Positions 30,093 to 62,614 of a stretch of DNA of 64,000 nucleotides are shown here, one piece after another. The DNA is from Octopus sinensis (lineage: Eukaryota). A model generated the notes under the pieces. The model made no database searches. It was not told the DNA's origin and worked only from the letters and a program-made list of their open reading frames with translations. The stretch covers positions 21,142,001 through 21,206,000 of the forward strand of contig NC_043002.1 of the NCBI RefSeq assembly GCF_006345805.1. The letters are read 5' to 3'. The translations under genes and the position numbers were made by a program. Numbering within the stretch: the stretch's first letter is position 1; every line of letters starts with the position of its first letter.

Positions 30093-30239
30093 GCAGTTGT
30101 TTTATTAAACAAAATTCGCAATACGGGAACAAAAGATTTCAGCGATAATGAAGAAGAAAGTTTATGTCTTCCGGTGACTCTGAAGGCTGAAATATCCCCA
30201 CATTTGCCACCCCCTCCAGAAGGCCTCACACGTAAACAG
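30093..30239 (+). CDS. ARHGEF10: ARHGEF10-like exon (AVVLLNKIRNT...SPHLPPPPEGLTRKQ)
   Basis: tttAG| acceptor, cag|GTaagt donor, 147 nt, phase 0-0. PPPPEGLTRKQ resembles the pre-DH motif PMPEGLSQQQ. Confidence 0.85.
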
Positions 30240-32036: not shown

Positions 32037-32081
<45 letters not shown>

Positions 32082-32090
32082 AAACATATA

Positions 32091-33264: not shown

Positions 33265-33464
33265 TACATGCAAAGTATATAGATACATAATCAACAAGCT
33301 TCTTTGAATTTTCATCAATTAAATTCCCTCATAAGGCATTGATTGGTCTAAGGCTATAGTAGAAAACATCTGCTGTACAGTGGGATTGAACCTAAAGCCA
33401 CTTGGCTGAGAAACAAACTACTTAACCACACAACCATACTTGTAGATAATATTTCAATAAACAA

Positions 33465-36412: not shown

Positions 36413-36461
<49 letters not shown>

Positions 36462-36891: not shown

Positions 36892-36922
<31 letters not shown>

Positions 36923-38606: not shown

Positions 38607-38641
<35 letters not shown>

Positions 38642-38696
38642 AGATGTAAGTATGTTACATATAATTATGTATATATGCATATATATCTTATTTATA

Positions 38697-39490
38697 TCAT
38701 CATCATCATCATCATCATCGTTTAACGTCCGCTTTCCATGCTAGCATGGGTTGGACGGTTCAACTGGGGTCTGGGAAGCCCGAAGGCTGCACCAGGCCAG
38801 TCAGATCTGGCAGTGTTTCTACAGCTGGATGCCCTTCCTAATGCCAACCACTCCGAGAGTGTAGTGGGTGATTTTATGTGCCACCGACACAGGTGCCAGA
38901 CGAGGCTGGCGAACGGCCACGCTCGGATGGTGTTTTTTACGTGCCACCGGCACGGAGGCCAGTCAATGCGGTACTGGCTACGGCCACGTTCGGATGGTTT
39001 TTGTATGTGCCACCGGCACTGGTACCACAAAACTACAAATTCCATTAATGCATTAATGTTCATCGAGTTTGCTTTTGATTTTGTCCATTTTCACTTGCCT
39101 CAACAGGTCTTCACAAGTAGAGTTATGTGTCCCAAGAAGGAAGGTATGCATAGGTGCACTGACTACGTTCCAGGTGGGGGCCATGGGTTATGGCCTCACT
39201 TGTCCAGCCGGGTCTTCTCACGCACAGCATACTTCCAAAGGTCTCGGTCTCTGGTCATTTCCTCGGTGAGACCTAAAGAGCGAAGGTCGTTCTTCACCAC
39301 CTCGTCCCAGGTTTTCCTGGGTCTGCCTCTTCCACAGGTCCCCTCAACCACCAGGGTGTGGCACTTTTTCACACAACTATCTTCATCCATTCTTACTACG
39401 TGTCCATACCAGCATAGACGCCTCTCTTGCACACCGCATCTGATGCTTCTTAGGTCCAACTTTTCTCTCAAGGCACTTACACTCTGTCTG
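38697..39490 (-). mobile_element. 5'-truncated RTE LINE copy of a sister subfamily with a monomeric 3' UTR
   Basis: ORF 39196-39528 (QERRLCWYGHV...RGRPRKTW...EKTRLDK*), followed leftwards by a single 3' UTR and an (ATC)n tail on the + strand. Confidence 0.92.
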
Positions 39491-39510
39491 GTATATATAT
39501 ATATATATAT

Positions 39511-42500
39511 TTTCTGGGCAGGGAACACTGACGGGGTTGGTGGCGTGGGTATACTTATCGCTGAGAAATGGATAGATAGAGTAATTGAGGTAATCAGAGT
39601 AAGTGACAGAATACTTAAGATTAGAATAGTGCTTCATAATAGATTAGCAACCATTATATCGGCCTATGCCCCTCAGCCAGGGCTACCGATGGACAGAAAG
39701 ACAGTTTCTATGACACCCTACTGCAGACCACCTCATTGACGAACGACAGGGACCTTCTCTTTGTGGCTGGTGATTTCAATGGTCATGTTGGACGACATGC
39801 TGGGGGCTTCCATGGCGTGCATGGAGGCTACGGTTTGGTTCCCGCAACGAGGAGGGAACCAGGCTGCTGAGTTCTGCGATGCGAATAGTCTTATGATCTG
39901 CAACACTAACTTCAGGAAACAAATAAGCCACCTGGTCACCTACCGATCGGGCCGGCATACTAGCCAAATCGACTACACTCCTCGCCAGAAAAAGGGAAAG
40001 ATGGCTGCTTATAAATGCCAAAACCTTCCCAGGCGAAGAATGCACCCCACAACATAGACTGGTAGTTAGTGACTTTAGGATCAGGACTAAGAGGGCGACT
40101 AGAAGACGACCAACATGGAGAAGAAGTGTCTGGAAGCTTAAAGACCCTGCGAATGGACAGAGATTTAGAGATATGTTACTTGAAGCCTTTGACGAAGTGG
40201 AAGGGGGTATAGCTACACATGGGGTAGAAGACACTGGACGTTTCTGAGGGACAACCTGCTGAAGCCGCTGACCAGATCTGTGGCTGGTGCAAAGTCCCCT
40301 AAGACCCAAAATAACATGGTGGTGGAACAATATTGTTGATAGGGCTATTAGACAAAAGAAACAGGCTTGGAAGGCCTGGAAGAACGGTGGTAGCAGGGAA
40401 GTGTATCAGACTGCCAGAAGGGAAGCCAGGAGACAGTCTATCTAGCAGAGGGGAAGCAGATAAAAGAAAATTTGCCAATGTCCTGCGCCGTGAGGATGAA
40501 AGACTTGAGGTATTTCGTGTTGCAAGACAGTGTGTGAGAGAGAATCGAGATGTGGTAGGAGAGAAATGTGTTCGCATGGAGGATGGTTCACTTGCGCTAA
40601 ATGAGGATGCAAAGAGAGAAGCTTGGAGACGCCACTATGAAAGGTTGCTGAATGAGGAAAATGAATGGGATAAAGAGAGTCTGCCGAATGTTGACCCAAC
40701 AGAGGGACCAGCTATCCGAGTTGATAGTTCCGTGGTAGCTAAGGCAATTAGAAGCATGAAGACAGGGAAAGCCCCAGGCCATCAGGAATTACTGCAGAGA
40801 TGCTCAAAATATCTGGTAGTGTCGGCTATAGCATAGTCACCCGTATAGTTAACCAGGTGATACACGAAGGAGTCATACCCAATGACTGGTGTAGCAGCAT
40901 AATAGTCAACTGCTACAAAGGTAAAGGCGATGCCCTAGATACAAATAACTACAGGGGCATCAAGCTGTTGGATCAGGTAATGAAGGTTACGGAGAGGGTT
41001 ATAGCCCAGTTAATTAGAGAGAGAGTTAGCTTAGATGATATGCAGTTTGGGTTCGTGCCAGGGAAAAGTACTACTGATGCTATATTCCTGGTAAGACAGC
41101 TGCAGGAGAATACCTAGCCAAAGGTAAGCCCTTGTACCTGGCTTTTGTTGACTTAGAGAAAGCCTTTGACAGGGTCCCCCGATCCCTTATCTGGTGGTCA
41201 ATGAGGAAACTAGGGATAGATGAATGGTTAGTGAGAGCTGTGCGAGCCATGTACAGAGACGCAGCTAGTAAGGTGAGGGTTGGCAACGAGTACAGTGAGA
41301 ATTCCGGGTAGAGGTTGGGGTCCACCAAGGTTCAGTCCTCAGCCCCCTCCTATTATCATAGTCCTCCAAGCAATAACGGAAGAATTTAAGACAGGATGCC
41401 CCTGGGAGCTCCTATATGCTGATGACCTTGCTCTAATGCTGAGTCACTATCAGAACTGGAGGAGAAGTTTCAGGTGTGGAAACAAGGATTAGAATCGAAG
41501 GGCCTTAGAATCAACCTAGCCAAAACCAAAGTCCTAATAAGTAGGAAGGTGGACCAACCACAAACGACTTCAGTAGATGGCCCTGCTCGATCTGTAAAAA
41601 AGGTGTAGGTAGAAACTCTATAAGGTGCACCAAGTGTAAGCTATGGACACATAAGAGGTGCAGCAATGTCAAAGGAAGGCTAACTAAGAAAATAGTTTTT
41701 GTCTGTGGCAGATGCTCAAGAGAAATAAACACTGGAAATGTGCAGAGACCAACTTCTACCACGTTCCAGGGAGACAAACTAGAAGTAGTTGATAGCTTCT
41801 GCTACCTAGGAGACCAAGTCAGTAGCCGGGGTGGGTGTGCTGAAAGTGTAACTGCTAGAGTAAGAATAGCCTGGGCAAAGTTTAGAGAGCTCTTACCCCT
41901 GCTGATGACAAAAGGCCTCTCGCTAAGAGTAAAAGGCAGACTATATGATGCGTGTGTACGTACAGCCATGCTACATGGTAGTGAAACATGGGCCGTGACA
42001 GCTGAGGATATGCGTAAGCTTGCAAGAAATGAAGCCAGTATGCTCCGATGGATGTGTAATGTCAGTGTTGTCATAATCGTCAGAGTGTAAGTACTTTGAG
42101 AGAAGTTGAACCTAAGAAGTGTCAGTTGTGGTGTGCAAGAGAGACGGCTGCGCTGGTATGGTCATGTGACGAGAATGGCTGAAGATAGTTGTGTGCAAAA
42201 GTGCTACACCCTAGCAGTTGAGGGAACCTGTGGAAGAGGTAGACCCAGGAAAACCTGGGACGAGGTGGTGAAGCACGACCATCGAACTTTAGGTCTCACC
42301 AAGGAAATGACTGAAGACCGAGTCCTATGGAAGTGTGCTGTGCATGAGAGGACCCGGCAGGACTAGTCAGGCCATATCCCGTGGCCCCTACCTGGGACGT
42401 AGTCGATCCACCTGTGCATACCTTCCTTCTTGGACACTTGTGAAGACCTGCTGAGGCAAGTGAAAATCAATCAAAATAGATGAACATCAATGGAATTTGT

Positions 42501-44470
42501 ATCTTTGTGGTACCAGTGCCTGTGGCACACAAGAAAACCATCCGAACGTGGCCGTAGCCAGTACCGCATCGACTCGCCTCCGTGCTATGGGAACATGGTG
42601 GCACATAAAAAACCATCCGAAGACCCGGCAAGACTAGTCAGGTCATAACCCGTGGGCCCTACCTGGGACGTAGTCAGTCCACCTGTACATACCTTCCTTC
42701 TTGCGACACTTGTGAAGACTGTTGAGGCAAGTGAAAATCAAAACAAATCAAAATAGATGAACATCAATGGAATTTGTATCTTTGTGGTGTGCCGGTTGTG
42801 GCACACAAGAATCCATCCGAACGTGGCCGTAGTCAGTACCGCTTGTGGTACCAGTGCCGGTGGCACACAAGAATCCATCCGACGTGGCCGTAGTCAGTAC
42901 CGCATCACTGGCCATCGTGCTGTGGGCACATAACAAACACCATCTGGTCGTGGCCGTTCGCCAGCCTCATCTAGCACCTGTGTCGGTGGCACATAAAAAG
43001 TAGTCAGTACCGCTTGTGGTACCAGTGCCGGTGGCACACAAGAATCCATCCGAACATGGCCGTAGTCAGTACCGCATCAGGCCATCGTGCTGTGGGCACA
43101 TAACCAAACACCATCCGGTCGTGGCCGTTCGCCAGCCTCATCTAGCACCTGTGTCGGTGGCACATAAAAACACCATCCGAAGACCCGGCAAGACTAGTCA
43201 GGCCATAACCCATGGCCCCTACCTGGGACGTAGTCAGTCCACCTGTGCCATACCTTCCTTCTTGTGACACTTGTGAAGACCTGTTGAGGCAAGTGAAAAT
43301 CAAAATCAAAACAAATCAAAATAGATGAACATCAATGGAATCTGTATCTTTGTGGTACCAGTGCCGTGGCACACACTTTGTGGTACCAGTGCCGGTGGCA
43401 CACAAGAGAACCATCCGACGTGGCCGTAGCCAGTTCCGCATCGACCGGCCTCCGTGCTGTGGGCACGTAACAAACACCATCCGATCATGGCCGTTCGCCA
43501 GCCTCATCTGGCACTGTGTCGGTGGCACATAAAAACACCTTCCGAAGACCCGGCAAGACTAGTCAGTCCACCTGTGCATACCTTCCTTCTTGTGACACTT
43601 GTGAAGACCGGTTGAGGCAAGTGAAAATCAAAATCAAATCAAATCAAAATAGACAAAATAGATGAACATCAATGGAATTTGTATCTTGTGGTACCAGTGC
43701 CTGTGGTACCAGTGCCTGTGGCACACAAGAAATCCATCAGTGCTGTAGTCAGTGCGGTGGGCACATGACAAACACCATCCGATCGTGGCCGTTCGCCAGC
43801 CTCAACTAGCACCTGTGTCGGTGGCACATAAAAACACCATCCGAAGACCCGGCAACACTAGTCAGGCCATAACCCATGGCCCCTACCTGGGACGTAGTCA
43901 GTCCACCTGTGCATACCTTCCTTCTTGTGACACTTGTGAAGACCTGTTGAGGCAAGTGAAAATCAAATCAAAACAAATCAAAATAGATGAACATCAATGG
44001 AATTTGTATCTTGTGGTGCCAGTGCCGTGGCACGTGGCACACAAGGGGGCCGTCCGAACGTGGCCGTAGCCGGTGCCGCATCGACTGGCCTGTGCTGTGG
44101 GCACGTAGCAAGCACCATCCGATCGTGGCCGTTTGCCAGCCTCATCTGGCACCGTGTCGGTGGCACATAAAAACACCATCCGAGCGGGGCCGTCTGCCAG
44201 CCTCGTCTGCCACCTGTGTCGGTGGCACATAAAAACACCATCCGAGCGTGGCCGTTTGCCAGCCTCGTCTGGCACCTGTGTCGGTGGCACATAAAATCAC
44301 CCACTACACTCTCGGGTGGTTGGCGTTAGGAAGGGCATCCAGCTGTAGAAACACTGCCAGATCTGGCTGGACTGGTGCAGCTTTCGGGCTCCCCAGACCC
44401 CAGTTGAACCGTCCAACCCATGCTAGCATGGAAAGCGGACGTTAAATGATGATGATGATGATGATGATGA
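39511..44470 (+). mobile_element. RTE-clade LINE, 5'-truncated: APE endonuclease, RT with inserted PHD finger, C-terminus (stop 42364-42366), tandemly amplified 3' UTR, (GAT)n tail
   Basis: APE motifs GVGILI, IISAYAP, GDFNGHVG, SQIDY. RT motifs [45 protein letters not shown]-terminal RLRWYGHV, RGRPRKTW. Several frameshifts. Confidence 0.95.
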
Positions 44471-44480
44471 TACACATATA

Positions 44481-44757
44481 AACAATTGCAGCGTGGAAAG
44501 TGTTTGTAAGCCATTTAAGAAACACACAAAAGCCGTTCGATTCACTTCAACATTTAAGTTTAATTTGTCAAAATATTTTCGTCACTTCAAGACTGCGACC
44601 TGTTCACTGACAAAAATCTTTGCTGCATCAGTGAACAGGTCGCGGTCTTAAAGCGACGAAAATATTTTGAAAATTTAAACTTAAATGTTGAAGTGAATCA
44701 AATGGCTTTTGCGTGTTTCTTAAATGGCTTACAAACACCTTCCACGTTGCAATTGTT
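44481..44757. repeat. Fold-back inverted repeat (~130-bp arms, 17-nt spacer)
   Basis: 44481-44610 is the reverse complement of 44628-44757 at about 90% identity. A non-folded homologue lies at ~23945-24150. Confidence 0.9.
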
Positions 44758-44922
44758 TTCATTTCAGCACACAATCTCAGATCAAATCACTTGCTATGCA
44801 AGTATATCTCCGTAATATATACGTATATATATGTATATATGTGTGTGTGTGTGTACTGTGTGTGTATCATTGACATTTTTCCTTCCTCCGTCTTCCCTTC
44901 TTTGGACCATTCCTTTTTGTAT

Positions 44923-44957
44923 GTTTCTGATGAAAAGCTCTGCTTGAAACGTTAAAT
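44923..44957 (+). ncRNA. Minimal type-I hammerhead ribozyme motif in a Penelope-like terminal repeat
   Basis: GUUU-CUGAUGA-A-AAGC(UCU)GCUU-GAA-AC|GU-U-AAAU. Intact core, 4-bp helix II, helix I GUUU/AAAU, palindromic ACGU helix III. Confidence 0.55.
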
Positions 44958-45072
44958 CCTTTTTTCTTTCCTTTCCTGAGCGTCCAATAACACTATACTT
45001 GTTCCACATCCTCGCATTGTGTTTTCTCTTTGTGTTTTCATGTTTGGATTAACTATATATATGCATACATAC

Positions 45073-45120
<48 letters not shown>

Positions 45121-45361
45121 GCATACATATTTTTTTTTCATTTCATTATATGTAAAACCTCACACTTTAAGTCTGTCTTTGTATTATTCCCCTCATCCTT
45201 CACCCTGGTGACAAATAAAAAAAATCACCATCATCGTCATCGTCATCATCATCATCATGTTGCTGTTGTTGTTGCCATTGTTATTGTAGTTGTTGTCATT
45301 GTGCAAAAAGTTTCTTCAGTATGTGGTTGCTGTTCTATTCCATATATGTTTTTCTTTTCAG

Positions 45362-45439
45362 ATCAAAAGGCGGTGTGTGTTAGAATGTATCATATCCAGC
45401 GAAAAGTCGTATATCGAAAGTCTCCAGAGAATACACAAC
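45362..45439 (+). CDS. ARHGEF10: ARHGEF10-like exon, DH start (IKRRCVLECIISSEKSYIESLQRIHN)
   Basis: ttttcAG| and |GTaagt, 78 nt, phase 0-0. DH conserved region 1 (SEKSYIESL). Confidence 0.92.
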
Positions 45440-45527
45440 GTAAGTTGAGCAAAACTGCTAATAGAACTTGATACTACTACTATACTACTATACATACTAC
45501 TACAGTATACTACTATAATACAACATA

Positions 45528-47420
45528 CAAGGTCGTAACAAAAGGTTTCTGGACTAGTTATGGTTAATAAAATATAACTTATTTACCTAATAAGATTTTA
45601 TAGGTTGCTTGAAGCATTGTATATGGAATATAATGTTGAAAGATTTTAAAGGCCAAACAATGCAAATAGATTTTAAGATGAGGTAACCTAAACTAAAAGT
45701 ATGTTACATGGTAATCTTTGGTCTTTTATATACATCCAGTATTTTGGGACATACAAGTCCCTTATTCAGGGTTAAAAAGAAACTGTCCTTTGTAAGATGT
45801 CTTTTGTTGGTGCCCGTGCTAGTAGGGTGCCAAGAGCACCATCCAAGCATGATCGTTGCCAGAGCAGCCAACTGGCTTCCGTGCCAGTGGCATGTAAAAG
45901 GGCACCATTCAAGCGTGATCTCTACCAACGTCGCCTTACTGGCACTTGTGCTGGTGGCATGTGTAAAAAGATTTGAGCGAGGTCGTTGCCAGTACCGCCT
46001 GACTGGCACGGTGGCACATAAAAAGCACCCACTACACTCTCGGAGTGGTTGGCGTTAGGAAGGGCATCAAGCTGTAGAAACTCTGCCAAATCAAGATTGG
46101 AGCCTAGTGCAGCCATCTGGTTCGTCAGCCCTCAGTCAAAATTGTCCAACCCATGCTAGCATGGAAAGCGGACGTTAAATGATGATGATGATAAAATAAT
46201 TCTATGATTATATTTGAATTTTCAAGTGTTTCTCTTCTTCATGAATGTTAGTGACGTCAGTTATTAACTTATTGCCCCACAAATCAATTTTCATCACCTC
46301 TTTTCTAATATGTAGCAAATGTACCTGTGTGTGTATGTCGATATGTATTGCATGCCTAGCTCCAATCTCTTATTTATTTGTGGGTTTAATTTATAGATAA
46401 TCAAAGCTTCCTTAATTCTTAAGTTGCCAAGATTTCTATCATTGGCTTCAATAGTAACTTTAATTTGTTTGTTGGTATTTTAAATATTGGATACATATAA
46501 GACCAAAGATTACCAGGTGACTCACTTTTAGTTTACATTACTGCATCTTAAAATCTATTTGCATTGTTTGGCCTTTTAAATCTTTCAACATTATTTACCT
46601 AAGTTTTAATATCATCTTCGAAATAGTCACCTTGTGCTGCAATACACCTGTCCCAACATCCCTGCATCCCCAAAGTCCATCCCCTCCTCATCATGGTGGG
46701 GACGTTGGCAGCAGGTGGTGTCAGAGCTATGCCGTCGGGAACTTTGGTTCCTGGTAGGACCACTCAAGGTGGATTGGTCTGATACCGAGTGGTATTAGGG
46801 CCACAACCCGGCAGATGGGTGAAAATCCTCAAGGTGTCTGTTTCGGCAACCGGCAGCTCCTTGGTCATTCTGTCCCTGCGTCTGCGGACAATCTGCGGCA
46901 AACAGGATGTCTCTACATGCAGGATTGTTGGGGGCCACTTGTGAAATTAATATTCCCACGAAACTTCTTCCACCGCCATGGTTCAAGATGCCTCGAGGGT
47001 GGTAGAAGAAGCCGATTCAACCCGCCCAAGGCGAATGTCACCACAAGTACAAGTAAGTACATCCCTGCCACTTTTGGAATACGGTTTGAAAGTCATTTTC
47101 TGTAAGCAAATTGAGGAGCTTATGTGATTTGCTCTGGATCTCAACAACTTCTGTCCCTTAGGGAAGAGATGGAAGTCTGCAGGTACTAAAGCTGGCAAAT
47201 AGGGCAGATGCCAAAATGATACCATGTTGTTTTTGGTGAGAAGCTCATGAGTGAAGACAGCTCAGTTAAGAATTCAATTCTTTGTACTCCACAGATCTGG
47301 TCACTTATGCCGAATGTCCTTCCTCAAGCGCTTCAAATTGTCAGAGTAACACATTTGATTGACAGTCTGGTCCTTGCAAGAAGAATTCTTGATGCACAAT
47401 GCCACATTTCTGGGAGTGAG
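45528..47420 (-). mobile_element. Mariner (DDxD) relic fragmented by nested insertions
   Basis: Minus strand: QGQTVNQ...LKRLRKDIRHK*PDLW, HLPYLPALVPADFHLFP (47070-47400) and CIAAQGDYFEDD* (~46600-46650). TA|CAAGGTCGTAACAAAAGG terminus at 45528. Confidence 0.75.
45631..46593. mobile_element. MITE-like element with ~110-bp terminal inverted repeats and a nested RTE 3' tail
   Basis: taatgttgaaagattttaaaggccaaacaatgcaaatagattttaagatg...gtaatctttggtctt (45631-45735) is the reverse complement of 46495-46593. Confidence 0.7.
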
Positions 47421-47508
47421 GCTCGTGGCAAATCTTCCATCAGCATCATCATCAACAATAACAAATAGTACACCAGTTTTCTAATATCTCTTCTATTTGA
47501 TGTTTCAG

Positions 47509-47682
47509 GATTACGAGACTCCAATTCTGGAAGCTGTTGACTCACAGAAATCTAAAGTGAAAAGTTCTCTGAAAAAGTTACGGGAGATACTCAACTACCA
47601 TCGCATGTTCCAGATCGAACTGGCCAATCGTGTCAATGAATGGCAGGAAGAAAATATCATTGGAGACATCTTTATCGCATCG
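47509..47682 (+). CDS. ARHGEF10: ARHGEF10-like exon, DH (DYETPILE...LREILNYHRMFQIELANRVNEWQEENIIGDIFIAS)
   Basis: tttcAG| and |GTgtgt, 174 nt, phase 0-0. Typical DH motifs EILxxHxxF and IGDIF. Confidence 0.93.
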
Positions 47683-47854
47683 GTGTGTGTTTGATTCATG
47701 TCTACTACTATCATGAAATATATTGCCTCATTTTTTAAAAAGTATTCTTTTATTGGTATAGTTCTTTGTATTTGTGTTATGCATGTCCAACTATCTACCT
47801 CTATAATATATATATATATATACATACATACATACATATACATATAATATACAT

Positions 47855-47888
<34 letters not shown>

Positions 47889-48226
47889 ATATATATATAT
47901 AAAATATAATTATATATATATATGATATATATTATATTATATTATATTATAAGATATATATATATATATATTATAAGATATATATATATATATATAAAAT
48001 GTGACCACGTGTGTACCGTTGGCGATTTTTTTTTTTCCTCTATCTTCCCTTCTCTGGATCTTTCCTCTCCTATGTTTCCGACGAAGAGCTCCGCTCGAAA
48101 TGTTAAACCCTCCTTCTTTCCTTCTTTCCTGAGCGTCCAATAAGTTTATATTTGTTCCACGTCCTCACGTTGTTGTGTTTTTTTGTGCTATCATATTTGG
48201 ATTAACTTTATATATATATATATATA

Positions 48227-48265
<39 letters not shown>

Positions 48266-48784
48266 TAATGAGTGAGAGAACAGTGTGCATGCCATCAAAG
48301 TGACACTGGGGTAAAATATACAAAGCCCAGTATACCCATCATGACTACCCGTCTGATAAGGGTACACTAGGCACATGCATCACAACTATGTGCATAACAT
48401 AGTGATTTCATATCAAGATAAACAGCACATGACCTTGCAGGTGGAGTCCAGTTAGAATTTTCTTCAGGTTGAGTAGCTCATCCTAAGGGTTGTTTAAGGA
48501 TGTTGAACGAAACACCCATGTTTCCAGAGGTGAATTATTTAAACCCCAAAGAATCCCTCTCAACATATGGCTATGATGCTTCCCAACTATTTCTGCTCGT
48601 GATCAGAGATGCACATATCGTCAGCCATTAAGGGACATGCTCAACTGGTTATGGTCAAACAACTTACAAGCAAATCTGTGGAATTGAGCAGAATATTTGT
48701 TGTAGCCCATCTTTTATACCAAGACAAAACAATGTACATGATAACACTTCCAATCAGTTAAGATCAGAAGCCATGTCGTATATA

Positions 48785-48822
<38 letters not shown>

Positions 48823-49294
48823 TGTATGTGTGTGTATTTGTTTGTGTGTCTTTGTTTATCCCCGCAACATCGTTTGACAACCGCTGCTGGAGTAAAGAGA
48901 AAAGAGAGTATGTATGTATGTATGTATTTTTTGTGGTGAAGGTACATGACTCAGTGGTTAGAGTGTCAGGCTCAGAATCATGAGGTAGTGAGTTTGACTC
49001 CCAGACTAGGCTATGTGTTGCGTTCTTGAGTGAGACACTTTATTTCACATTACTCCAGTTCACTCAGCTGTAGAAATGAGTTGCGACATCACTGGTGCCA
49101 AGCTGTATCGGCCCCTTTGCCTCTCCCTTGGATAACATTGGTGGCATAGTGAGGGGATGCTCGTATGCATGGGCAACTGCTGGTCTTCCATAAACAACCT
49201 TGCCTGGACTTATGCCTTATAGGGTAACTTTCTAGGTGTAATCCCATGGTAGTTCATGACTGACAGGGGTCTTTTTTTATGTGTGTATGTGGCT

Positions 49295-49810
49295 GGACCT
49301 CAAAAATTCCAGACACACAGATTCTGAGGACAGCTGATATCTTGAGTATTGAGGCGATGGTGCACAAGCACCGGTTGCATTGGACTGGACACCATATTAG
49401 AATGGAGGATAGAAGGATTCCTAAGCAGATGTTCTATGGAGAACTTGTGAATGGAAGGAGACTCCGGCAGAAACCAAGGCTGCGATTTAAGGACTGTGTC
49501 AAGTCCTCATTAAAGGCCTGTGATATGCAGGACACTGGCTGGAAGAACAGTGCCTGTCATTGCCACGGATGGAGGAAGCAGGTTGGAGAGGGGATCAACA
49601 CTTTTGAGAGAGCATGTGTCCAGCATGAAGAACTTAAGTGAGCTGCGCGAAAGCACACAGCTCGTATGGTGAGTGGGGAAGGCTTGGTCGGCAATGAGCT
49701 GGGCTCATTGGCCACCAGCAGAGCCACAAATGCAAAATATAAGTTAGTCCTAGAGCGCACAATATTCCTGAAGGTCGGCAATGGTCTTCCTCGGTCACAA
49801 GTGGACGGCC
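49295..49810 (+). mobile_element. RTE-BovB-type LINE C-terminal fragment
   Basis: HRLHWTGHHIRMEDRRIPKQMFYGEL..GRR...PRLRFKDCVK is a canonical RTE/BovB C-terminus. Confidence 0.85.
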
Positions 49811-49929
49811 ATCATCATGTATGTAGATATGTAGCAATTAAGTCCAAAAAAGTATTTACATTTTTTTTCTCATCTTGAAAATGCAACAGAACTTTCTTTC
49901 CAACCTAATGCATTATTGTCTGTTTGCAG

Positions 49930-50046
49930 TTCTCAAAGTCAATGGTACTTGATGCTTACAGTGTATACGTGAATAATTTTACTGCCACCATGGAAGATAT
50001 CAAGAAGCTACAAAGAACTCGACAGTCATTCAGGGATTTCCTAAAA
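49930..50046 (+). CDS. ARHGEF10: ARHGEF10-like exon, DH ([39 protein letters not shown])
   Basis: ttgcAG| and |GTaagc, 117 nt, phase 0-0. Family-diagnostic [11 protein letters not shown]. Confidence 0.95.
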
Positions 50047-51165
50047 GTAAGCTCACTCTAACTTTTAAATATAAGTATATAAGTATATATACAGGTGCAG
50101 GCATGGCTGCTTGGTAAGAAGCTTGCTTCTCAACCACATGGTTCAGGGTTCAGTCCCACTGTGGGGTGCCTTGGGCAAGTGTCTTCTACAATAGCCTTTG
50201 GCTAACCAAAGCCTTGTGAGTGGCTTTGGTAGACAGAAACTAAAGATTACCTGTACATATACACACACATGCTCTCATACACACACACACAGAGGCCCAT
50301 GTATTTGCACAAACACACACACACATGTGGACACATCCATATGCATGCACACATACACACACACACATGCAAATGCATGAAACACACATCACTCCATACA
50401 ACACATGCACTAGGTTACATGTATGCATACACACACATGCTCGCATACATTACACAGGCCCATGCTTACACACACACATACATGATAATCCCACACGCAT
50501 GTACACACGTCCATACACGCACACATACACATATGCACACAGATGCACACATACCACACACACACACACACACACACACATACATATACATATAAAAACA
50601 GATGGTATATTTATTTCTTTATTGTCCACAGGGGGCTAAACATAGAGGGGACAAACAAGGACAAACAAAGGGATTAAGTCAATTACATCGACCCCAGTGC
50701 ATAACTGGTACTTGTTTGATCAACCCCAAAAAGATGAAAGGCAAAGTCGACCTCGGTGGAATTTGAACTCAGAACGTAACGGCAGACGAAATACCTATTT
50801 CTTTACTACCCACAAGGGGCTAAGCACAGAGAGGACAAACAAGGACAGACAAATGGATTAAGTCGATTATATCGGCCCCAGTGCATAACTGATACTTAAT
50901 TTATCAACCCCGAAAGGATGAAAGGCAAAGTCGACCTCGGCAGAATTTGAACTCAGAATGTAGCGGCAGACGAAATACTGCAAAGCATTTCGCCCAGTGT
51001 GCTAACATTTCTGCCAGCTCGCCACCTTAAACAGATGCTGTATTAACCCTCACTTAATTGACCCCACTTAGTTTGAAATAATGTTGATATATTATACATT
51101 GATGAATTCTGTTTTAATTATCAATCAACCATCTAATTATAAGAAATATATTTGATCTTTTATAG

Positions 51166-51258
51166 CAAAAGGAAGCAAATAGCCCAGACCGTCTGTCAAT
51201 ATTTGCCCTAATGGTGAAGCCAATTCAGAGATTCCCACAGTTTATCATGTGTCTTCAG
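51166..51258 (+). CDS. ARHGEF10: ARHGEF10-like exon, DH (QKEANSPDRLSIFALMVKPIQRFPQFIMCLQ)
   Basis: tatAG| and cag|GTaagg, 93 nt, phase 0-0. DH conserved region 3 (KPIQRFPQF). Not in the ORF track. Confidence 0.95.
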
Positions 51259-51299
51259 GTAAGGAATTTTCCATTGAATTGTCTTTGATATCTTCTGTT

Positions 51300-51335
<36 letters not shown>

Positions 51336-51385
51336 AGGTAGAGGTAGAGGTAGAGGTAGTAGTAGTAGTAGTAGTAGAGGTAGTG

Positions 51386-51423
<38 letters not shown>

Positions 51424-52886
51424 TGTTGTTGTAGTAGTAGTAGTAGTAGTAGTAGCAGTAGGTGGTGGTGGTGGTGGCGGCGGCAGCGGTGGTGCTAGTA
51501 GTAGTAGTTGTTTTTGTTGTTGTTTAACGAAAGTGTGTGGCCTTTTGGTTAGCATGTTGGGCTCTTGTTTCTAAGTTCATGGGTTCATTTCCAAGACCAG
51601 GAGCACATTGTGTGCTTAACCCTTTAGCATTTTTAAGCTGGCCATATCAGACCCGAATATCCTACCTGTTTTATTTCAAACTCACTAGATCCAGCCTCTC
51701 ATACCTACCCCTACGATGTCACTATAAATATAAGCAATCATATCATTGAAGTCTTGAATCTATGAGTTACACAACTACATAGACACCATCCTCCCAGAGC
51801 TGTAGCCCAAAGTCAGTACTGACCTCCACCAAACCTCTGGTTAAAGTGCATTCCTGACTTGACCAACCAATCTTTGTTTCAAATGCAATTTTTCTATATT
51901 AAAAAGGAAGGAAAGGATTTCAGAGAGACTTGCTGCTATTTCTGAAATTGAGGGATTTCATGAAGGCTCTCTTAGTTCAACATAGTTGGTGTTGTTCTGC
52001 TAAATAGTTCCAGGGCAGCACTGGAACAACTATGTACTTTTCTACTCTAGGCACAAGGCCCGAAATTTTGTAGGGAGGGAGCCAGTTGATTAGATCGGCC
52101 CCAGTATGCAACTGGTACTTAATTTATCGACCCCGAAAGGATGATGAAAGGCAAAGTCGACCTCGGCAGAATCTGAACTCAGAACGTAGTGGCAGATGAA
52201 ATACCTATTTCTTTACTACTCACAAGGGACTAAACACAGAGGAGACAAACAAGGACAGACAGATGGATTGAGTCGATTATATCAATCCCAGTGAGTAACT
52301 GGTACTTAATTTATCGACCCCGAAAGGATGAAAGGCAAAGTCGACCGCGGCAGAATTTGAACTCAGAACGTAAAGACAGATGAAATATTGCTGAGCATTT
52401 TGCCCAGCATGCTAACGTCTCATCCAGCTCGCTGCCTTACTGGAACAATTATATAATTGAACAGACTCTCCAATTCTGACCATCTCTTAATTACTTTTTT
52501 TCAAATGCAATATATCTTAGACAACATTATCCATCATAGCCCTCTTCTATTTCAGTATAATACAGTATGATTTGAGGAAAATTCGATTATTATTTCTAGC
52601 AAATTCATAGACTACATAGAGGCTTGCTTGTTAGTTCATTATGATAATGACAATGATGAGGATAAAATTGATGAAGATAATAATTATTGTTGATTAGCCC
52701 TAGGTCAATAGTTCTTATGATCAAAACCCAGACCATTTTACTTTGATTTCAGGCATAATGCTTCTAGGAATACATTAGCACTCTGAATGGTTACTTAGAG
52801 GCTCCCTCTGCCAAATTATGTAGTTGTATAGAAGGATTAACATGTTAATCATTATCAATATTCACTTTGTCGTTTCTTCATGTCAG

Positions 52887-53093
52887 GATCTGCTTAAATA
52901 CACACCCAAGGGTCATGAAGACCGAAAGGCCCTCCAGCTTGCTGTGACCATCCTGGAGAATCTGGCTCTCAAATTGAATGATCGGAAACGAGAGAGTGAG
53001 AAGAAATTTGCAGCCAAACAACTATCGGTGAAGATTCGGATGTCAGCGTTCCATAACTCCTTCTTGATCCGTGAAGATGACATGTTTTATATC
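52887..53093 (+). CDS. ARHGEF10: ARHGEF10-like exon, DH end and PH start ([20 protein letters not shown]...[11 protein letters not shown])
   Basis: tgtcAG| and |GTaagt, 207 nt, phase 0-0 (within ORF 52824-53183). Confidence 0.95.
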
Positions 53094-54809
53094 GTAAGTT
53101 TGTTGTTGTTATTGTTGTTATTGATGGCTGTTGAGCTGTTGCTGTTGCTATTGAGCAAACGGTCTTCATCCCAGAGCTCGTAAGATGGGAGAAGTCCGAA
53201 GTGTGGTCCTTTGCTATTTGTAAGACCCGCAAAAGAGAAAACAGGTCAACTCCCGACACCAAGAGCATTGATGGATGGATGAATGCGCATCCAGGCTCAG
53301 TGGTTGCATAGGAATTCAGGGACAAGAAACAGGAAGAAAGAGTGAGAGAAAGTTGGAGCAAAAGAGTACAACAGAGTTCGCCACCACCCCCTGCCAGAGC
53401 CTCGTGGAGCTTTTAGATGTTTTTGCTCAATAAACACACACAACGCCCAGTCTGGGAATCGAAACCGCGATCCTCCGACCACGAGTCCGCTGCCCTAACC
53501 ATTGGGCCATTGTGCCTTCACGTTGTTGATGGTGGTGATGGTGGTGGTGATGCTGGAATTGGTGGTGGTTGTGTTGGCAGTGTATGGATCCAACAAAAGT
53601 TGTGTTAAGATAGGTATTCCAGTTGGATATCCTTCCAGTCAGATACCCTTCCAGTCACTGACCCTCACCTGTTTCCAGGCAAAGTAATATTTCATTTAGT
53701 CCTTTAAACATCAAACAAACAGTTCAATGGCAGGATATATTTTCATGGAAAACTGTAAATAAATGGCAGAGGCAGCAGCAGCAGAGGCGGCGGCGGTGGT
53801 GGTGGTGGTGGTGGTGGTGGTGGCGTAGGGTGAATCAAGTGGTGCTAGTGTGGGTGATGATGGTAGTTATTGCTTCCTAGAAGAGTACCTCATCCGATCC
53901 AGCCAAACACCATTTTATTGTACCCGCTTCCAACATCTCAAAGATTATGGAGACACAATAGTGTCCTGCTGTAGAGAAAGCACATGGTTACTTGACCAGA
54001 GAGAGAAAAAGAAAGGGAAAGGGAGGCACACACACACACACACACTCATACATACACACACTCATACATACACACACTCACACATACATACACACACACA
54101 ACATTGCCCCAATGTGTCCTTTTTCAAATGGTTGAATGGGATTTGAGGGAGATTCGACTTCTATTTCCATCAGTTGTTATAATGACCAAGAGAGTCCCTC
54201 TTTTGAGTTGTGTGTCTGAGTGTATGTGTGTGTGTGTGTAAGCACATACAGACACACATACATCTATATTCATGTATGTGTGAATACATATATCTCATCA
54301 TCATCATCATCATCATCATTATCATTGTCATCATTTAACGTCCATCTTCCATACTAGCATGGGTGATGTATATATAATATATATACACATACACACACCA
54401 AACAGTTGTACTTATGTGCCATTTGTGACAGATAATGGACTGTGGCTCCTTCAACCCGTAGCTCACCTCTCTATTTATCTAGCTAGCTATGACTCCTCAC
54501 TGTTAATTAATCATTCAAATATTTACTCCTAACTTACCTTTAATTTATGCTAAATTATTCATTCCTTTTCTTCACCTCATTGTTTCCTATTTACCCTCTC
54601 ACTTTACCTTTAATATATTCACAAATTCTCACTACCTTTTATATCGCCTATTATATAGTGACATAATTCCCAGTCCATTAACTTTAGCTCTAATTTATGC
54701 TGATCTATTCACTCTTCATTTACTTCTTCTTGCAGTTATGTACCTCCCACTCTCAAACATTTAATTTATGTTAATTAATTCAGGTATTCTTTCTCCTTTG
54801 TTTTTATAG

Positions 54810-54883
54810 GTGAATAATTGTACAAAGAAGCGGCGATTAATAATGCTAAATGATGCACTTGTGTGTATCAAGGTGCAGGAGAG
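54810..54883 (+). CDS. ARHGEF10: ARHGEF10-like exon, PH-like (VNNCTKKRRLIMLNDALVCIKVQE)
   Basis: ttatAG| and |GTatgt, 74 nt, phase 0-2. RRxxMLNDxLxC PH motif. Confidence 0.9.
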
Positions 54884-55571
54884 GTATGTGTATTTTTGTT
54901 GATGTTAATGTTTAGTCCTGGGTCAATCTTGATCCAGTACATCTGTGATCAAAGGTATCATCATCATCATCATCATCATTTAGCGTCCGTTCTCCATGCT
55001 AGCATGGGTTGGACGGTTCAACTGGGGTCTGTGAAGCTGGAAGGCTTCATCAGGCCCAGTCAGATCTGGCAGTGTTTCTACGGCTGGATGCCCTTCCTAA
55101 TGCCAACTACTCCGTGAGTGTAGTGGGTGCTTTTTACGTGCCAGGTATAATAAATAATAATAAATGCACCCTTTTAAAGCCTAGCCAGGCTCATGGGCCC
55201 GGTTTCCTGGTTTCAGTGGCATATGTGTTCCCCAGCTGGATGGGACACCAGTCCATCACAGCGTTACACATTTTTGCCAGCTGAGTGAACTGGAGCAACG
55301 TGAAATGAAGCATTTTGCTCAAGAACACAACGCATCGCCTGGTCCAGGAATCGAAACCACAATCTTACTATCATGATGCTGACACCCTAACCACTAAGCT
55401 ACGTGCCTCCACAATCAAAGGTATAAACAGCCATAATCATAATGTCTATAGGACAACATTGCCTAATGTGTCCTTTTTCAAATGGTTGAATGGGATTTGA
55501 GGGAGATTTGACTTCTATTTCAATTAGTTGTTATAATGACCAAGAGAGTCCCTCTTTGGAGTTATGTGTCT

Positions 55572-55611
<40 letters not shown>

Positions 55612-55962
55612 ACATACATGCATAGAAACACACACATATTCACACTCACATCTATTAAAAAATGTTTTAAAAAAAATTTCTTGATAAACGTAGGGGTTGA
55701 TTTGTTATAATAATTTTGCTTCCCATCCACATAGTTCCAGGTTCAGTCCCACTGCATGGCACCTTGGGCAAGTGTTTTCTACTATAGCCTCAAACCAGCT
55801 AAACACACATGCATGCACACACACACCCACACACACACACACGTGCTCACACACATACACACACAAACATATACTCAAACACACTGGCACACACATGCTG
55901 ACATACACAGACACACTCACACACTGACACACACACACACACATGCACACATGCAGAAACAA

Positions 55963-55994
<32 letters not shown>

Positions 55995-57058
55995 ACACAC
56001 ACGTAAATGTCAAACAATAAGAATGAATGCTCAACGCCCTCTACATTGGTGGATAAAATTTCTCTATTTGTGTATAATGGTTGCCGTTGGTTTTATGTAA
56101 AGAAAAATATGTTAATACCTTAACAATTTTTCAAGCTGATCCATAGTCTTGAAGAGTTTTAGTCAAACAAATCAACTCTAGGACTTATTTTTTAAGCCTA
56201 GTACTTATTCTACTGGTCTCTTTTGCCAAACTGCTAAGTTACGGGGACATAAACACACCAACATCGGTTGGCAAATGGTGGTAGGGAGAAAAGCACAGAC
56301 ACAAAGACACACACACAGATGCATACATCATTATCATCATCATGATGTAAATGTATGTCTGTGTGTCATTGTGTCTGTTTTTGTCTCCCCCTTACCACTT
56401 GTCAATTAATGGTGGTGTCTTTTAGTTTCCATCTACCAAATCCACTCACAAGACTTTGGTTGGCCCAAGGCTATAGTAGAAAACACTTGTCCAGAGTACC
56501 ATACAATGGGACTGAACCTGGAACCATGTTGTTGGGAAGCAAGCTTCTTACCACACAGCCCCATCTGAGCTATATAGATATATATAGTTTAAATTTACAG
56601 TAAAACAAAAGATGAAGACAGATGCATGAACAACAACCAGGTGTATTAATTGGATGCTCAGGAAAGTGAGAAAGTTTTTATGCTTCGAGCCTGTGCTCTT
56701 CAACAGAAAAGAATAAGAAAAAATAAACAGAGAGAGAATAAAAAAAAACTTGTGGATTTAGCAATATATCATCATCATCGTTTAACGTCCGTTTTCCTTG
56801 CTAGCATGGGTTGGACGGTTTGACCGGGGTCTGGGAAGCCAGGGGTTGCACCAGGCTCCAGTCTGATTTGGCAGTGTTTCTACAGCTGGATGCCCTTCCT
56901 AATGCCAACCACTCTGTGTGTAGTGCGTGCTTTTTACATGCCACCGGCACAGGTGCCAAGGGAGGCTGGCAGCGGCCATGATCGGTTGGTGCTTTTTATG
57001 TGCCACCAGCACAGAACCCAGTCAAGGCGGTGCTGGCATTGGCCATGTTCGGATGGTG

Positions 57059-57114
<56 letters not shown>

Positions 57115-57184
57115 GCACACATATATTGTTATTAATTTATCATAATCATTTCTTAATAATAATAATGGATGTATTTGATTACAG

Positions 57185-57333
57185 TGACAGAGATGGCGAG
57201 CTCATTGAACGGTACAAACACAAGTGGACTGTCCCTTTACAGGATGTACGGCTAAAGTCCAGCTGTACCATACCACCTAAGATGAAATCTCCATATACAC
57301 CAACAGGAGAACCATATGGCTTCCAAAGAATTG
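57185..57333 (+). CDS. ARHGEF10: ARHGEF10-like exon, PH-like (DRDGELIERYKHKWTVPLQDV...GFQRI)
   Basis: ttacAG| and |GTaagg, 149 nt, phase 2-1. RYxxKWxVPL PH motif. Confidence 0.9.
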
Positions 57334-57399
57334 GTAAGGTTTTGGTGGTACCCCACCTCATTTGGCACTACAAATATCTGAGTTTTTTGAAGAATGTAA

Positions 57400-57995
57400 G
57401 AATAGCTTAGCCTCTGGAGCAACACTTGAGGGTAGCCTGTTGAGTGATACATAAGAGTAGCTTAGCCTGTTGAGTGATACTTAAATATAGTTCAGATGTT
57501 ACAGTTGAATGTTACTAGTTTTGTTGAGTGATGCATGAGAGTAACTTGTTGAGAGTAGCTTGAAGGTAACTGAGTTTGTTGAGAAAAACATATATGGAAT
57601 AAAACAGCAACCACATACTGAAGAAACTTTTTGCACAATGACAACAACTACAATAACAATGGCAACAACAGCAACATGATGATGATTTTTTTTATTTGTC
57701 ACCAGGGTGAAGGATGAGGGAAATAATACAAAGACAGACTTAAAGTGTGAGGTTTTACATATAATGAAATGAAAAAAAAAAATGTATGCATGTATATATA
57801 TATATATTGTTGAATGAAACCTAACAAAAGTGATACTTGAAGGTAGTTTAGCTTGTTGAGAGATACTTAATGGTAGCTTAGCTTACTAAGTTATACTTGA
57901 GGATAGATTATCCTGTTGCATATTAACTGAAGGTAGCTTAGCTTATTGAGTGATACATGAGTCTAGCTTATTGAACGAACTTCAAGGCAGATTAG
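57400..57995 (+). repeat. Degenerate ~30-bp minisatellite (tagcttagcctgttgagtgatacttgaagg), split by the 57583-57806 insertion
   Basis: Repeated gttgagtgatac and tagcttagc motifs on both sides of the insertion. Confidence 0.75.
57583..57806 (-). repeat. Inverted copy of the 3' end of the intron preceding exon 45362
   Basis: Reverse complement of ~45103-45354, near-identical apart from microsatellite length changes. Flanked by TTGTTGA direct repeats (57576-57582 and 57807-57813). Confidence 0.93.
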
Positions 57996-58043
57996 TCTAT
58001 CTTCTCTTTTTCTTTCTTTCTCTCACTCCCTTTCTCAGTTTGC

Positions 58044-58105
<62 letters not shown>

Positions 58106-58242
58106 TGTTCTCTGTCTTTTTCTGTCAACAATTCTTTTTCTTTCACTCTTTCTTTGTCTGCCTCTCACACCCTCTCTCTATCCCAACCTATCAGTCTGTC
58201 TGTCTGTCTGTATATTTATAAATTTATTCATTAAAATTTCAG

Positions 58243-58358
58243 ACTCTAAAAGTAAAAATGTAGAAGACATTTATGAAGAGATCCATGCAATGAATCATGA
58301 TTATATCATATGGAGCCAAATGCACAACCTTGCTTCATCCCTCAAACTAGCATATGAT
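58243..58358 (+). CDS. ARHGEF10: ARHGEF10-like exon (SKSKNVEDIYEEIHAMNHDYIIWSQMHNLASSLKLAYD)
   Basis: atttcAG| and |GTaagt, 116 nt, phase 1-0. Bridges the phases of its neighbours and resembles LYQDLQNLLHDLNVIGQI. Confidence 0.85.
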
Positions 58359-58734
58359 GTAAGTGATTGTTTTCTCTCTATAAAACCACTGAACTTAATA
58401 CAACGTTTCTCAACCTGGGTTTCCCGGAACCCTAGGGTTCTGCAAAAGGTTCCTAGGAGTTCTGCAAGAAAGAGCGAGATAAGCTAATGCTAACTTCATA
58501 ATCATCATAATTTATATATATTTATATATATTTTACTCTTTTACTTGTTTCAGTCATTTGACTGTGGCCATGCTGGAGCACTGCCTTTAGTCGAGCAAAT
58601 CAACTCCAGGACTTATTCTTTGTAAGCCTAGTACTTATTCTAATGGTCTCTTTTGCTGAACCGCTAAGTTACGGGGACGTAAACACACCAGCATTGGTTG
58701 TCAAGCGATGTTGGGGGGGACAAACAAACACATC

Positions 58735-60576: not shown

Positions 60577-62614
60577 GTAGGTCTAAGGTCTTTTATATTT
60601 ATTAATTTTTTTCTCTTTAATTCTTTGTCACATTTGGTGATAATGATGCTACTGTCAAGGATGAAGGACTCTTGTTCCTATTCAAATTTTAAACAGTCTA
60701 CTAGGCACAGGCGTGGGTTCATGGCCGACCAAAGCCTTGTGAGTGGATCTGGTAGATGGAAACTGAAAGAAGCCCATCATATATATATATATGTAAGTAT
60801 GTGTGGGTTTATGTGTTTGTCCCCCTAACATCGCTTGACAACCGATGCTGGTGTGTTTATGTTCCTGTAACTTAGCGGTTCGGCAAAAGAGACCGATAGA
60901 ATAAGTACTAGGCTTACAAAGAATAATTCCCGGGGTCAAGTTGCTCAACTAAAGGCAGTGCTCCAGCATGGCCACAGTCAAATGACTGAAACAATTAAAA
61001 GAGTAAAAGAGTCTGTTGATGAAGTCTCTAAAATCCTATATGAAAAAATGGCTTGACCCCTAAATCCAAAAACAGTACATGAGACCTTGTTTATTATTGA
61101 TTCATTGATCATATGAGATCCTAAACCAAGGTGCCATGTAAAAAACATTGGTATAGGTGTTGGTGCCACTTAAAAAGTACTGGCAATGGTGCCATGTAAA
61201 AAGTATCCTGTACACTCTGTGGAATGGTTGTTGACAGGACGGCCATCAAGCCAAAAGAGACTATGAAACCTGATGTGGCCACTGGCCTTGCCAACTCATG
61301 CCAGCATGGAAAACAGACATTAAATGTTGATGATGATGATGATGATGATCATCATCATCACTTATCCAGGATAATATGGTAATGCTCAACTGTGAACCAT
61401 GTTACGCTTATCATGGATTGATTTGTAATAACACAGGTTGGCAGTCAGTCAAAGATTTTATCTGTATTGCAAAAACACATCCCAGCAACCATCCATAATG
61501 GTCAGCTACCCAGAATGCACAAACTATTTCTTGTGCTTATATGACCCTGCTATAAGGCTGTGTATTTTCTATAAGGATTTAGGTACTTGTACTCATCAAC
61601 ATGTGGAGGCATGTGGCTTAGTGGTTAGGGTATCAGAACCATGATCGTAAGATTGTGGTTTTGATTCCTGGACCAGGCGACGCATTGTGTTCTTGAGCAA
61701 AACACTTCATTTCACGTTGCTCCAGTCCACTCAGCTAGAAAAAATGAGTAACGCTGTGATGGACTGGCGTTCGGTCCAGCTGGGGAACACATACGCCATA
61801 GAAACTGGGAAACCGGGCCCATGAGCCTAGCTAGGCTTTAAAAGGGCGCATTTATTTTATTTTTTACTCATCAATATGGGACCAGTGAACAGAAAAAAAT
61901 ATGAAAGTGCATGATCCAAATAAATGGTGCAGGTGAGTGTATTCTCTACAGGAAAGGGTAGAGATGATCAAGAAAATACAAAATGAAAGAAGCTTTGATG
62001 CTGTGGGCTGCAAATTTGGTGTCAATGAATTTGCTATTTGTTCCATTTACAAAGTGCATAGAGATTTATCACTGTGCTTTTTGGAACCAAACCCCCTTGA
62101 TAAGCAAAGATAGATGTAATATAATATATTGTAAGGAAGCATTGGTAAACTAAAGTTTTGTTATGAATATATAGGTGCAGGTGTGGCTGTGTACAGGTGC
62201 AGGCATGGCTGTGTGGAAAGAAGCTTGCTTCCCAACCACATTTTTGTTTTTATTATTAACTAGCTTAAAAGTCGCACTTTGTGTGGACTTTTAAGCTAGC
62301 TCCTGCAGAGGGCTAATTGGACTTGTGGCCCAAAACTAAAGAGAGCAATAATAATAAGGCATTTATTGGTACCCTACCAATATGGTATTTCTTTAAATTC
62401 AGTTGAAATGAAAAACTTGTATGCTCACAAATTTTTGGAGTTCTTTTAAAATTTGAATTTTCAAATTATAACAAATTCTCATCTAGATCTGATCCCAATG
62501 CTGGATGTTTAAGAACCAAATGAAGGGCAGATTTTCAACCTCAGGATCATTCCGATTTCAAAAAGATATAATATATCTATGTAGAGCAAATGTAGCCTGA
62601 GATACAGGGGTCCT

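Follow-up and report, generated by a model that had tools for sequence, protein, structure and literature searches.

The ARHGEF10 locus and its DH and PH exons

The stretch of DNA analysed in this study (the window; 64,000 nucleotides of Octopus sinensis NC_043002.1, positions 21,142,001 to 21,206,000 of the forward strand) contains part of a gene for a guanine nucleotide exchange factor (GEF), in which seven exons, E1 to E7, are bracketed by two reverse-complementary intron segments that we call arm L and arm R. A preliminary description had noticed this pair and suggested that the duplex could drive a circular RNA (circRNA) or cause skipping of the enclosed exons. Here we describe the locus and the pair, for which we favour an origin by recent inverted duplication of arm L, and we weigh its possible effects on the RNA.

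A scan for AG/GT splice signals and open frames recovered the seven exons independently, and they matched the annotated proteins of Octopus bimaculoides and Octopus vulgaris. Their lengths (78+174+117+93+207+74+149) add up to 892 nt, which is not a multiple of 3, in agreement with the preliminary description. The exons, together with the neighbouring ones, are as follows.

E0, 30093..30239, + strand: upstream exon, ending ...PPPPEGLTRKQ and followed by the donor gtaagt
E1, 45362-45439, + strand: 78 nt, start of the DH domain (IKRRCVLECIISSEKSYIESLQRIHN); acceptor of the proposed back-splice
E2, 47509-47682, + strand: 174 nt, DH domain
E3, 49930-50046, + strand: 117 nt, DH domain
E4, 51166-51258, + strand: 93 nt, DH domain
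E5, 52887-53093, + strand: 207 nt, last part of the DH domain and beginning of PH_19
E6, 54810-54883, + strand: 74 nt, PH_19
E7, 57185-57333, + strand: 149 nt, PH_19, ending in phase 1; its donor, G/gtaagg, is the proposed back-splice donor
E8, 58243..58361, + strand: downstream exon

In the translation of E1 to E7, Pfam placed RhoGEF at residues 10-185 and PH_19 at residues 213-335, confirming that the bracketed exons encode the DH domain plus part of the PH domain. Both DH (PF00621) and PH_19 (PF19057) were thus found in exons of the window, while WD40_2 (PF19056) was present in the orthologues, and the nearest proteins to the host gene were ARHGEF10 and ARHGEF10L. Judged by these domains and relatives, the host gene is an ARHGEF10 orthologue. 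The protein encoded in the window was 96% identical to O. bimaculoides XP_014776104 and 84% identical to that of Argonauta hians. Compared with O. vulgaris CAI9724835, whose gene spans 158 kb, it showed 100% identity in E1-E3 and few differences elsewhere; the matches of E4 and E5 contained 2 and 1 mismatches, respectively, at match edges that overran the exon bounds and may represent intron read-through. These comparisons suggest a genome of the O. vulgaris group. A further protein search, covering lengths of 378-1202 aa, gave no match at E<=1e-90. Joining E0 directly to E8 (30239 to 58243) produced TLKVKM followed by a stop, that is, termination after six codons, so the frameshift that had been predicted for a seven-exon skip was verified.

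Some differences between gene models and between genera were also observed. Where the window (54810-54883, 57185-57333) and O. bimaculoides read ...LNDALVCIKVQESDRDGELIERYK, CAI9724835 reads ...LNDALV followed by LTEMAELIERYK, which looks like a 1-nt indel in E7 of that assembly, for which the gene model compensates with another E6 donor. In O. bimaculoides, the current model, XP_014776104.2 (1128 aa), begins with a Met encoded within E2 (orthologous locus L002, 5001 onward; window 47605) and drops E0 and E1, both of which are present in version.1 (1276 aa). In A. hians (orthologous locus L001, 39306-44773) the seven DH/PH exons occupy ~5.5 kb, as compared with 12 kb in the window, the Octopus introns at E1-E7 being ~2 times as long as those of Argonauta and filled with repeats.

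A pair of reverse-complementary arms flanks E1 to E7

Arm L is reverse-complementary to arm R, with an identity of ~98% outside a 27-nt microsatellite indel. The repeat search returned the pair as two inverted matches, I1 (45103-45234 / 57676-57807, 132 nt, 98%) and I5 (45251-45355 / 57582-57686, 105 nt, 95%), and pairwise alignment showed that both belong to one repeat of 253 nt in arm L and 226 nt in arm R. The breaks in this alignment were the 27-nt length difference, located in an (ATC/GTC)n microsatellite, a difference of one unit in a GTT run, and a few substitutions. When either arm was compared with the whole window by blastn, two copies only were detected (E = 6e-95), and all remaining matches corresponded to (TA)n, (ATC)n or (GTT)n runs. 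Chance is excluded as an explanation of the match, and the three analyses agree with the preliminary description in that a reverse-complementary intron pair brackets the seven exons. The arms and the minisatellite that surrounds arm R are located as follows.

Arm L, 45103..45355, + strand: 253 nt, intron segment directly 5' of the E1 acceptor, taken as the ancestral copy
Minisatellite, left part, 57395..57581, + strand: period of ~30 nt; the last unit reads ...TTTGTT-GAG at the junction
Arm R, 57582..57807, - strand: 226 nt, probable inverted copy of arm L, within the minisatellite of ~30-nt period
Minisatellite, right part, 57808..57990, + strand: restarts with TGTT, the tail of the interrupted unit

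Arm L lies in the 15.1-kb intron 30240-45361 and arm R, which starts 249 nt past the donor at 57333, in the 909-nt intron 57334-58242; the arms are thus present in both introns adjoining the exon block. Arm L ends at 45355 and is separated from the exon start at 45362 by 6 nt (TTTCAG), so the positions first reported for both arms hold. With its end 6 nt from the AG, arm L takes in the polypyrimidine tract as well as any branch point. No YTNAY or NTRAY branch motif was found in the 100 nt before 45362, and the branch point of E1 must therefore be a weak site within the arm. Arm L contains a (TA)n run at its start, an A8 run, the (ATC/GTC)n microsatellite at 45225-45258 and a GTT-rich stretch, while the plus strand of arm R ends with A11 followed by TGTATGCATG(TA)n; overall, the arms have ~30% G+C, with A8-A11 runs and microsatellites. 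The E1 acceptor region reads gtttttcttttcag in the window (45340-45361) and gtttttctctcctgttatccag in O. bimaculoides (L002 2990-3027), where it is 8 nt longer.

To describe the predicted duplex, we folded both arms together with ViennaRNA. The cofold contained 223 intermolecular bp with a predicted energy of -352 kcal/mol, or -295 kcal/mol after subtracting self-folding. When longer flanks were included, the minimum-energy pairing was predicted to extend to the AG of E1, covering the whole polypyrimidine tract.

Arm R is absent from the orthologous site of O. bimaculoides

We compared the window with the orthologous locus of O. bimaculoides (L002, CM046606.1:92734242-92777154, which contains 7.5 kb of N). 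The orthologue of arm L was found directly 5' of E1 (L002 2759-3005), while arm R was absent from the orthologous site, its flanks being collinear on both sides (window 57077-57548 with L002 15305-15771, and window 57829-58517 with L002 15881-16529). The empty site (L002 15760-16010) consists of an unbroken minisatellite that keeps a strict 30-nt register and contains no N gap. The arm sequence is therefore present in two copies in the 64-kb window versus one, the orthologue of arm L, in 35 kb of O. bimaculoides sequence. In A. hians (L001) the seven-exon structure is the same, but the introns could not be aligned and were of no use as an outgroup; the arms were not found in that locus.

At the insertion point in the window, the interrupted minisatellite unit keeps its first 3 (GAG) and last 4 (TGTT) bases, with its inner 23 nt exchanged for arm R. 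The GAG at the left junction is the reverse complement of CTC, with which arm L ended ancestrally (...TTTTTCTC, a form retained by O. bimaculoides and arm R), and this match gives the left junction a microhomology of 3 nt. The junction matches, GAG at one side and T/AT at the other, are so short that chance could yield them. No target-site duplication (TSD) was found at arm R. An apparent one, TGTTGA, was rejected as a periodic motif of the minisatellite that is also present at the empty site of O. bimaculoides.

A three-way alignment of arm L, arm R and the O. bimaculoides arm L showed that L and R agree with each other and differ from O. bimaculoides at 8 robust sites (up to 13), while R and O. 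bimaculoides agree against L at 4 sites. No real site was found at which arm L and O. bimaculoides agree against arm R, which carries no private substitution. These patterns argue that arm R was copied from the arm L of the window's own lineage, after its split from O. bimaculoides. The divergence between L and R is ~1.9%, as compared with ~6-8% between the orthologous L arms and, assuming a clock, arm R would date to roughly the last quarter to third of the interval since the split.

Origin of arm R

Taken together, these observations suggest that arm R is probably a young, lineage-specific inverted duplicate of arm L, a dating and species assignment that go beyond the preliminary description. 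As expected for a templated insertion, the site is empty in the sister lineage, a donor (arm L) is present in cis 12.2 kb upstream, and arm R carries the lineage-specific states of this donor. After the split from O. bimaculoides, ~226 nt of the intron sequence 5' of the first DH-domain exon would have been copied in reverse orientation, and the copy would have landed 12.2 kb downstream, in the minisatellite of the short intron after E7, displacing 23 nt and leaving no TSD. The cis donor 12 kb away, the inversion, the small deletion, the possible short microhomology and the lack of a duplication together point to a templated insertion, and the junctions would fit template switching during repair or replication, of the microhomology-mediated break-induced replication/fork stalling and template switching (MMBIR/FoSTeS) or templated-insertion kind.

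Several points weigh against this interpretation. The origin was compared with one sister species only, O. bimaculoides, and the substitutions are unpolarised because the Argonauta introns do not align. The copy counts cover the window and the O. bimaculoides locus, and a donor copy elsewhere in the genome is conceivable. The size of the 23-nt deletion is uncertain, since minisatellite length varies, and a microhomology of 3 nt is by itself weak evidence. Finally, all 4 substitutions that followed the duplication are on arm L and 0 on arm R, a difference that is not significant (two-sided p ~0.12), and such a bias would also fit selection on the acceptor-proximal arm.

The arms could also be two copies of a mobile element, a short interspersed element (SINE) or a miniature inverted-repeat transposable element (MITE), inserted independently in opposite orientations in the manner of an Alu pair. 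The A11 and TGTATGCATG(TA)n end of arm R resembles a retroposon tail, and an 80-nt core of the arms shows ~60-65% similarity, as judged by eye in the alignment, with the head of a SINE-like octopus family that is abundant in the window, which suggests that arm L may hold an old, decayed repeat fragment, with no bearing on how arm R arose. Set against this are the presence of just two copies in the window and one in O. bimaculoides, the lack of a TSD at a site where 23 nt were deleted, and the fact that arm R shows the window-lineage states of arm L and not a family consensus. ARAGORN found no tRNA-like part or tRNA gene in the arms, and Rfam returned nothing at gathering score, its sub-threshold microRNA matches lying on microsatellites. 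On these grounds a transposon pair was rejected as very unlikely. About equally improbable is a precise loss, in O. bimaculoides, of an ancestral arm R, with the identity of L and R maintained by gene conversion. Minisatellites are unstable, and the array just 3' of arm R differs by ~44 nt between the species; however, O. bimaculoides keeps a complete, in-register unit at the R site, which the deletion must have restored, and this scenario further assumes conversion across a distance of 12 kb between inverted copies. The least probable of these explanations is an assembly artefact: arm R does sit in repetitive sequence, but 4 substitutions and two microsatellite length differences distinguish the copies, and both junctions are clean within otherwise collinear orthologous sequence.

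A retrocopy of the tail of an intron lariat was also considered and set aside, as a 226-nt copy would have to extend across any branch point and lacks the last ~13 nt of the ancestral intron. In an exact look-up of 10 open reading frames (ORFs) across the arm junctions in a collection of 15 billion proteins, none was found.

Other inverted pairs in the window

A comparison of the window with itself gave 201 inverted pairs at E<1e-8, among which L/R ranked ~30th by bit score. Most of the others were copies of dispersed repeats of 300-570 nt with 78-90% identity, and several also bracket exons, as in the following cases.

33477-33760 / 45916-46192: inverted pair around E1
55148-55413 / 61602-61866: inverted pair around E7-E9
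44369-44468 / 54957-55056: inverted pair around E1-E6

Four long repeat-derived pairs (266-339 nt) had predicted total cofold energies of -437 to -634 kcal/mol versus -352 kcal/mol for L/R and, net of self-folding, three of the four were predicted to be stronger than L/R, while three shorter pairs (100-140 nt) had weaker total energies. What sets L/R apart is that it has the highest identity among the pairs, no competitor for its arm cores between the arms, and its closeness to the acceptor. Exon bracketing by L/R is genuine, yet such a geometry is common in this gene, which is rich in repeats.

Other repeats were observed in the window. In the upstream intron, ~350 nt before arm L, there is a hairpin (44480-44610 / 44628-44758) with 131-nt arms that are 92% complementary and a 17-nt loop; its cofold energy is -191 kcal/mol and a sub-threshold Rfam match to mir-1295 lies at its centre. 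In appearance it resembles a MITE, and it would locally provide a strong substrate for enzymes acting on double-stranded RNA (dsRNA). The SINE-like family mentioned above, ~410 nt long with a characteristic head (TTTCTTTATTGCCCACCAGGGGCTAAAC...), is dispersed at 3500-3915, 14727-15147, 21257-21668, 50611-51030 and 52076-52457; it occurs in both orientations and is the source of many of the strongest inverted pairs. An open frame of 125 codons in the E2-E3 intron (49264-49638, + strand; ...HRLHWTGHHIRMEDRRIPKQMFYGEL...) resembles a remnant of a retrotransposon ORF, from its C-terminal end, and, according to the ORF listing, a tandem array of ~900 nt at 62705-63640 reads as MDGW repeats in several frames, with a 12-nt period (ATGGATGGATGG-like).

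Predicted consequences for the pre-mRNA

A pre-mRNA that still holds both introns could form a near-perfect duplex of ~223 bp. Arm L, located beside a complete acceptor, is transcribed 12.2 kb before arm R, and most transcripts would probably lose arm L first; likewise, the 909-nt downstream intron may be removed soon after arm R appears. In the remaining transcripts the duplex would offer ADAR a long dsRNA substrate: in silico, the arms provide the long, near-perfect intramolecular dsRNA that the enzyme uses, provided that both introns are in one molecule. The same duplex would hinder use of the E1 acceptor, whose branch site and polypyrimidine tract it would bury, and this burial would favour delayed splicing, or skipping followed by nonsense-mediated decay, at least as much as back-splicing. 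Moreover, since the pairing reaches 6 nt before the AG, it would occlude the very acceptor that back-splicing requires.

We then weighed the possibility that the pair is a functional cis-element, driving an 892-nt circRNA of E1-E7 or a regulated frameshifting skip that abolishes GEF activity. Inverted repeats of 30-40 nt suffice for circularisation in the human genes tested (PMC4201285), a minimum that the predicted 223 bp of L/R exceed, and the arm cores meet no competing partner between them. In addition, inverted intronic Alu pairs can turn a constitutive exon into an alternative one (PMC2533698), and on the hypothetical circle an ORF of 339 codons in the DH frame would start at an AUG located 18 nt 5' of the back-splice junction. 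However, the branch site and polypyrimidine tract of the required acceptor are predicted to be buried, whereas in the minimal upstream introns tested for circRNA formation the branch point and 3' splice site lay outside the 40-nt repeat, leaving the splice signals free; a stronger hairpin was inhibitory in some cases, and both poly(A) stretches and low-complexity sequence had detrimental effects (PMC4201285). In the octopus introns these signals are, in silico, not free of the duplex. Arm L would also be removable by splicing 12 kb before arm R exists, the gene contains many other inverted pairs, and the absence of arm R in O. bimaculoides argues against a conserved function. Finally, octopus circRNAs are few and at low levels: total RNA sequencing (RNA-seq) of 18 O. 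vulgaris tissues gave just 296 high-confidence circRNAs, a scarcity that the authors linked to ADAR activity, with most editing located in introns and 3' untranslated regions (PMC9699675). In one part of that study, its supplementary text, the term ARHGEF10 does not occur. On balance, we consider a functional cis-element unlikely.

The ATG of the hypothetical circle lies 18 nt before the E7 donor (57316-57333 joined to 45362) and the 339-codon ORF reads MASKEL across the junction into IKRRC.... Its presence is probably coincidental, the ATG being forced by a Tyr-Gly codon pair.

The circRNA, the masking of the branch point, the frameshifting skip and the ADAR substrate are all legitimate possibilities from known biology, less likely than the preliminary description stated. 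The element itself is probably near-neutral. Detectable A-to-I editing in the arms has about an even chance, any back-splice reads at depth are rather doubtful, and a biologically meaningful circRNA or regulated skip would be quite a surprise. The most probable outcome, in our model, is a near-neutral variant with occasional edited dsRNA, ahead of efficient production of the 892-nt circle. It would be similarly surprising if the templated duplication had given the O. vulgaris group, and not O. bimaculoides, a new cis-regulatory RNA structure that either makes an E1-E7 circRNA or throttles ARHGEF10. If this were true, the 339-codon ORF of the circRNA would encode a free-standing DH domain, throttling would act by masking of the E1 acceptor and would send transcripts to nonsense-mediated decay, and the four substitutions on the acceptor-side arm could be a compensatory response.

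As it stands, this is a structural variant of an ordinary kind, in an intron of a gene rich in repeats, and the animal is one in which circRNAs are reportedly scarce. If the pairing does act on the RNA, the two close octopus species, differing by one arm, would constitute a dated natural experiment with O. bimaculoides, which lacks arm R, as a ready-made control, and comparative RNA-seq would show directly how the gain of one intronic complementarity affects back-splicing, skipping and editing.

Comparison with known systems

The structure of arm R resembles that of templated insertions and MMBIR/FoSTeS events in its near donor on the same chromosome, inverted orientation, possible junction microhomology, loss of sequence at the acceptor site and lack of a TSD. 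It differs from them in being a germline event, possibly fixed, in a cephalopod intron, with a mechanism that is suggested by the junctions.

In mouse Sry, the classic case of a non-transposon inverted duplication driving a circular transcript, the arms extend over tens of kb and enclose a single exon. As in Sry, the complementary arms described here would derive from inverted duplication of local sequence, with no transposon insertion; in contrast to the Sry arms, they measure ~0.23 kb and surround seven exons over 12 kb, and circularisation is hypothetical. The inverted repeats that flank Sry have been cited as a model for circularisation (PMC4201285). By origin, the octopus pair would stand nearer to Sry and to templated insertions than to transposon pairs.

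The inverted intronic Alu pairs described by Lev-Maor et al. (2008, PMC2533698) are similar in that dsRNA spanning exons may cause these to be looped out, or may hide splice signals, besides being an ADAR substrate. They involve single exons and Alu elements, whereas here a skip would span seven exons and shift the frame.

A parallel in arrangement exists with the Alu/SINE pairs of human ZKSCAN1, HIPK3 and EPHB4 (Liang & Wilusz, 2014, PMC4201285), in which both introns adjoining the exon block carry the complementarity. Any action of the octopus pair would be in the manner of these pairs or of the intronic Alus that render exons alternative. As in those pairs, the octopus arms are far above the minimum of 30-40 nt and lie next to canonical splice sites. 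In contrast to the introns tested in that study, where these signals stayed unpaired, the upstream arm, reaching to 6 nt from the AG, includes the branch site and the polypyrimidine tract. A further difference is that the octopus arms are not transposon copies, one having most probably been copied locally from the other, which suggests that exon-flanking complementarity can come from local templated duplication and not just from transposon pairs.

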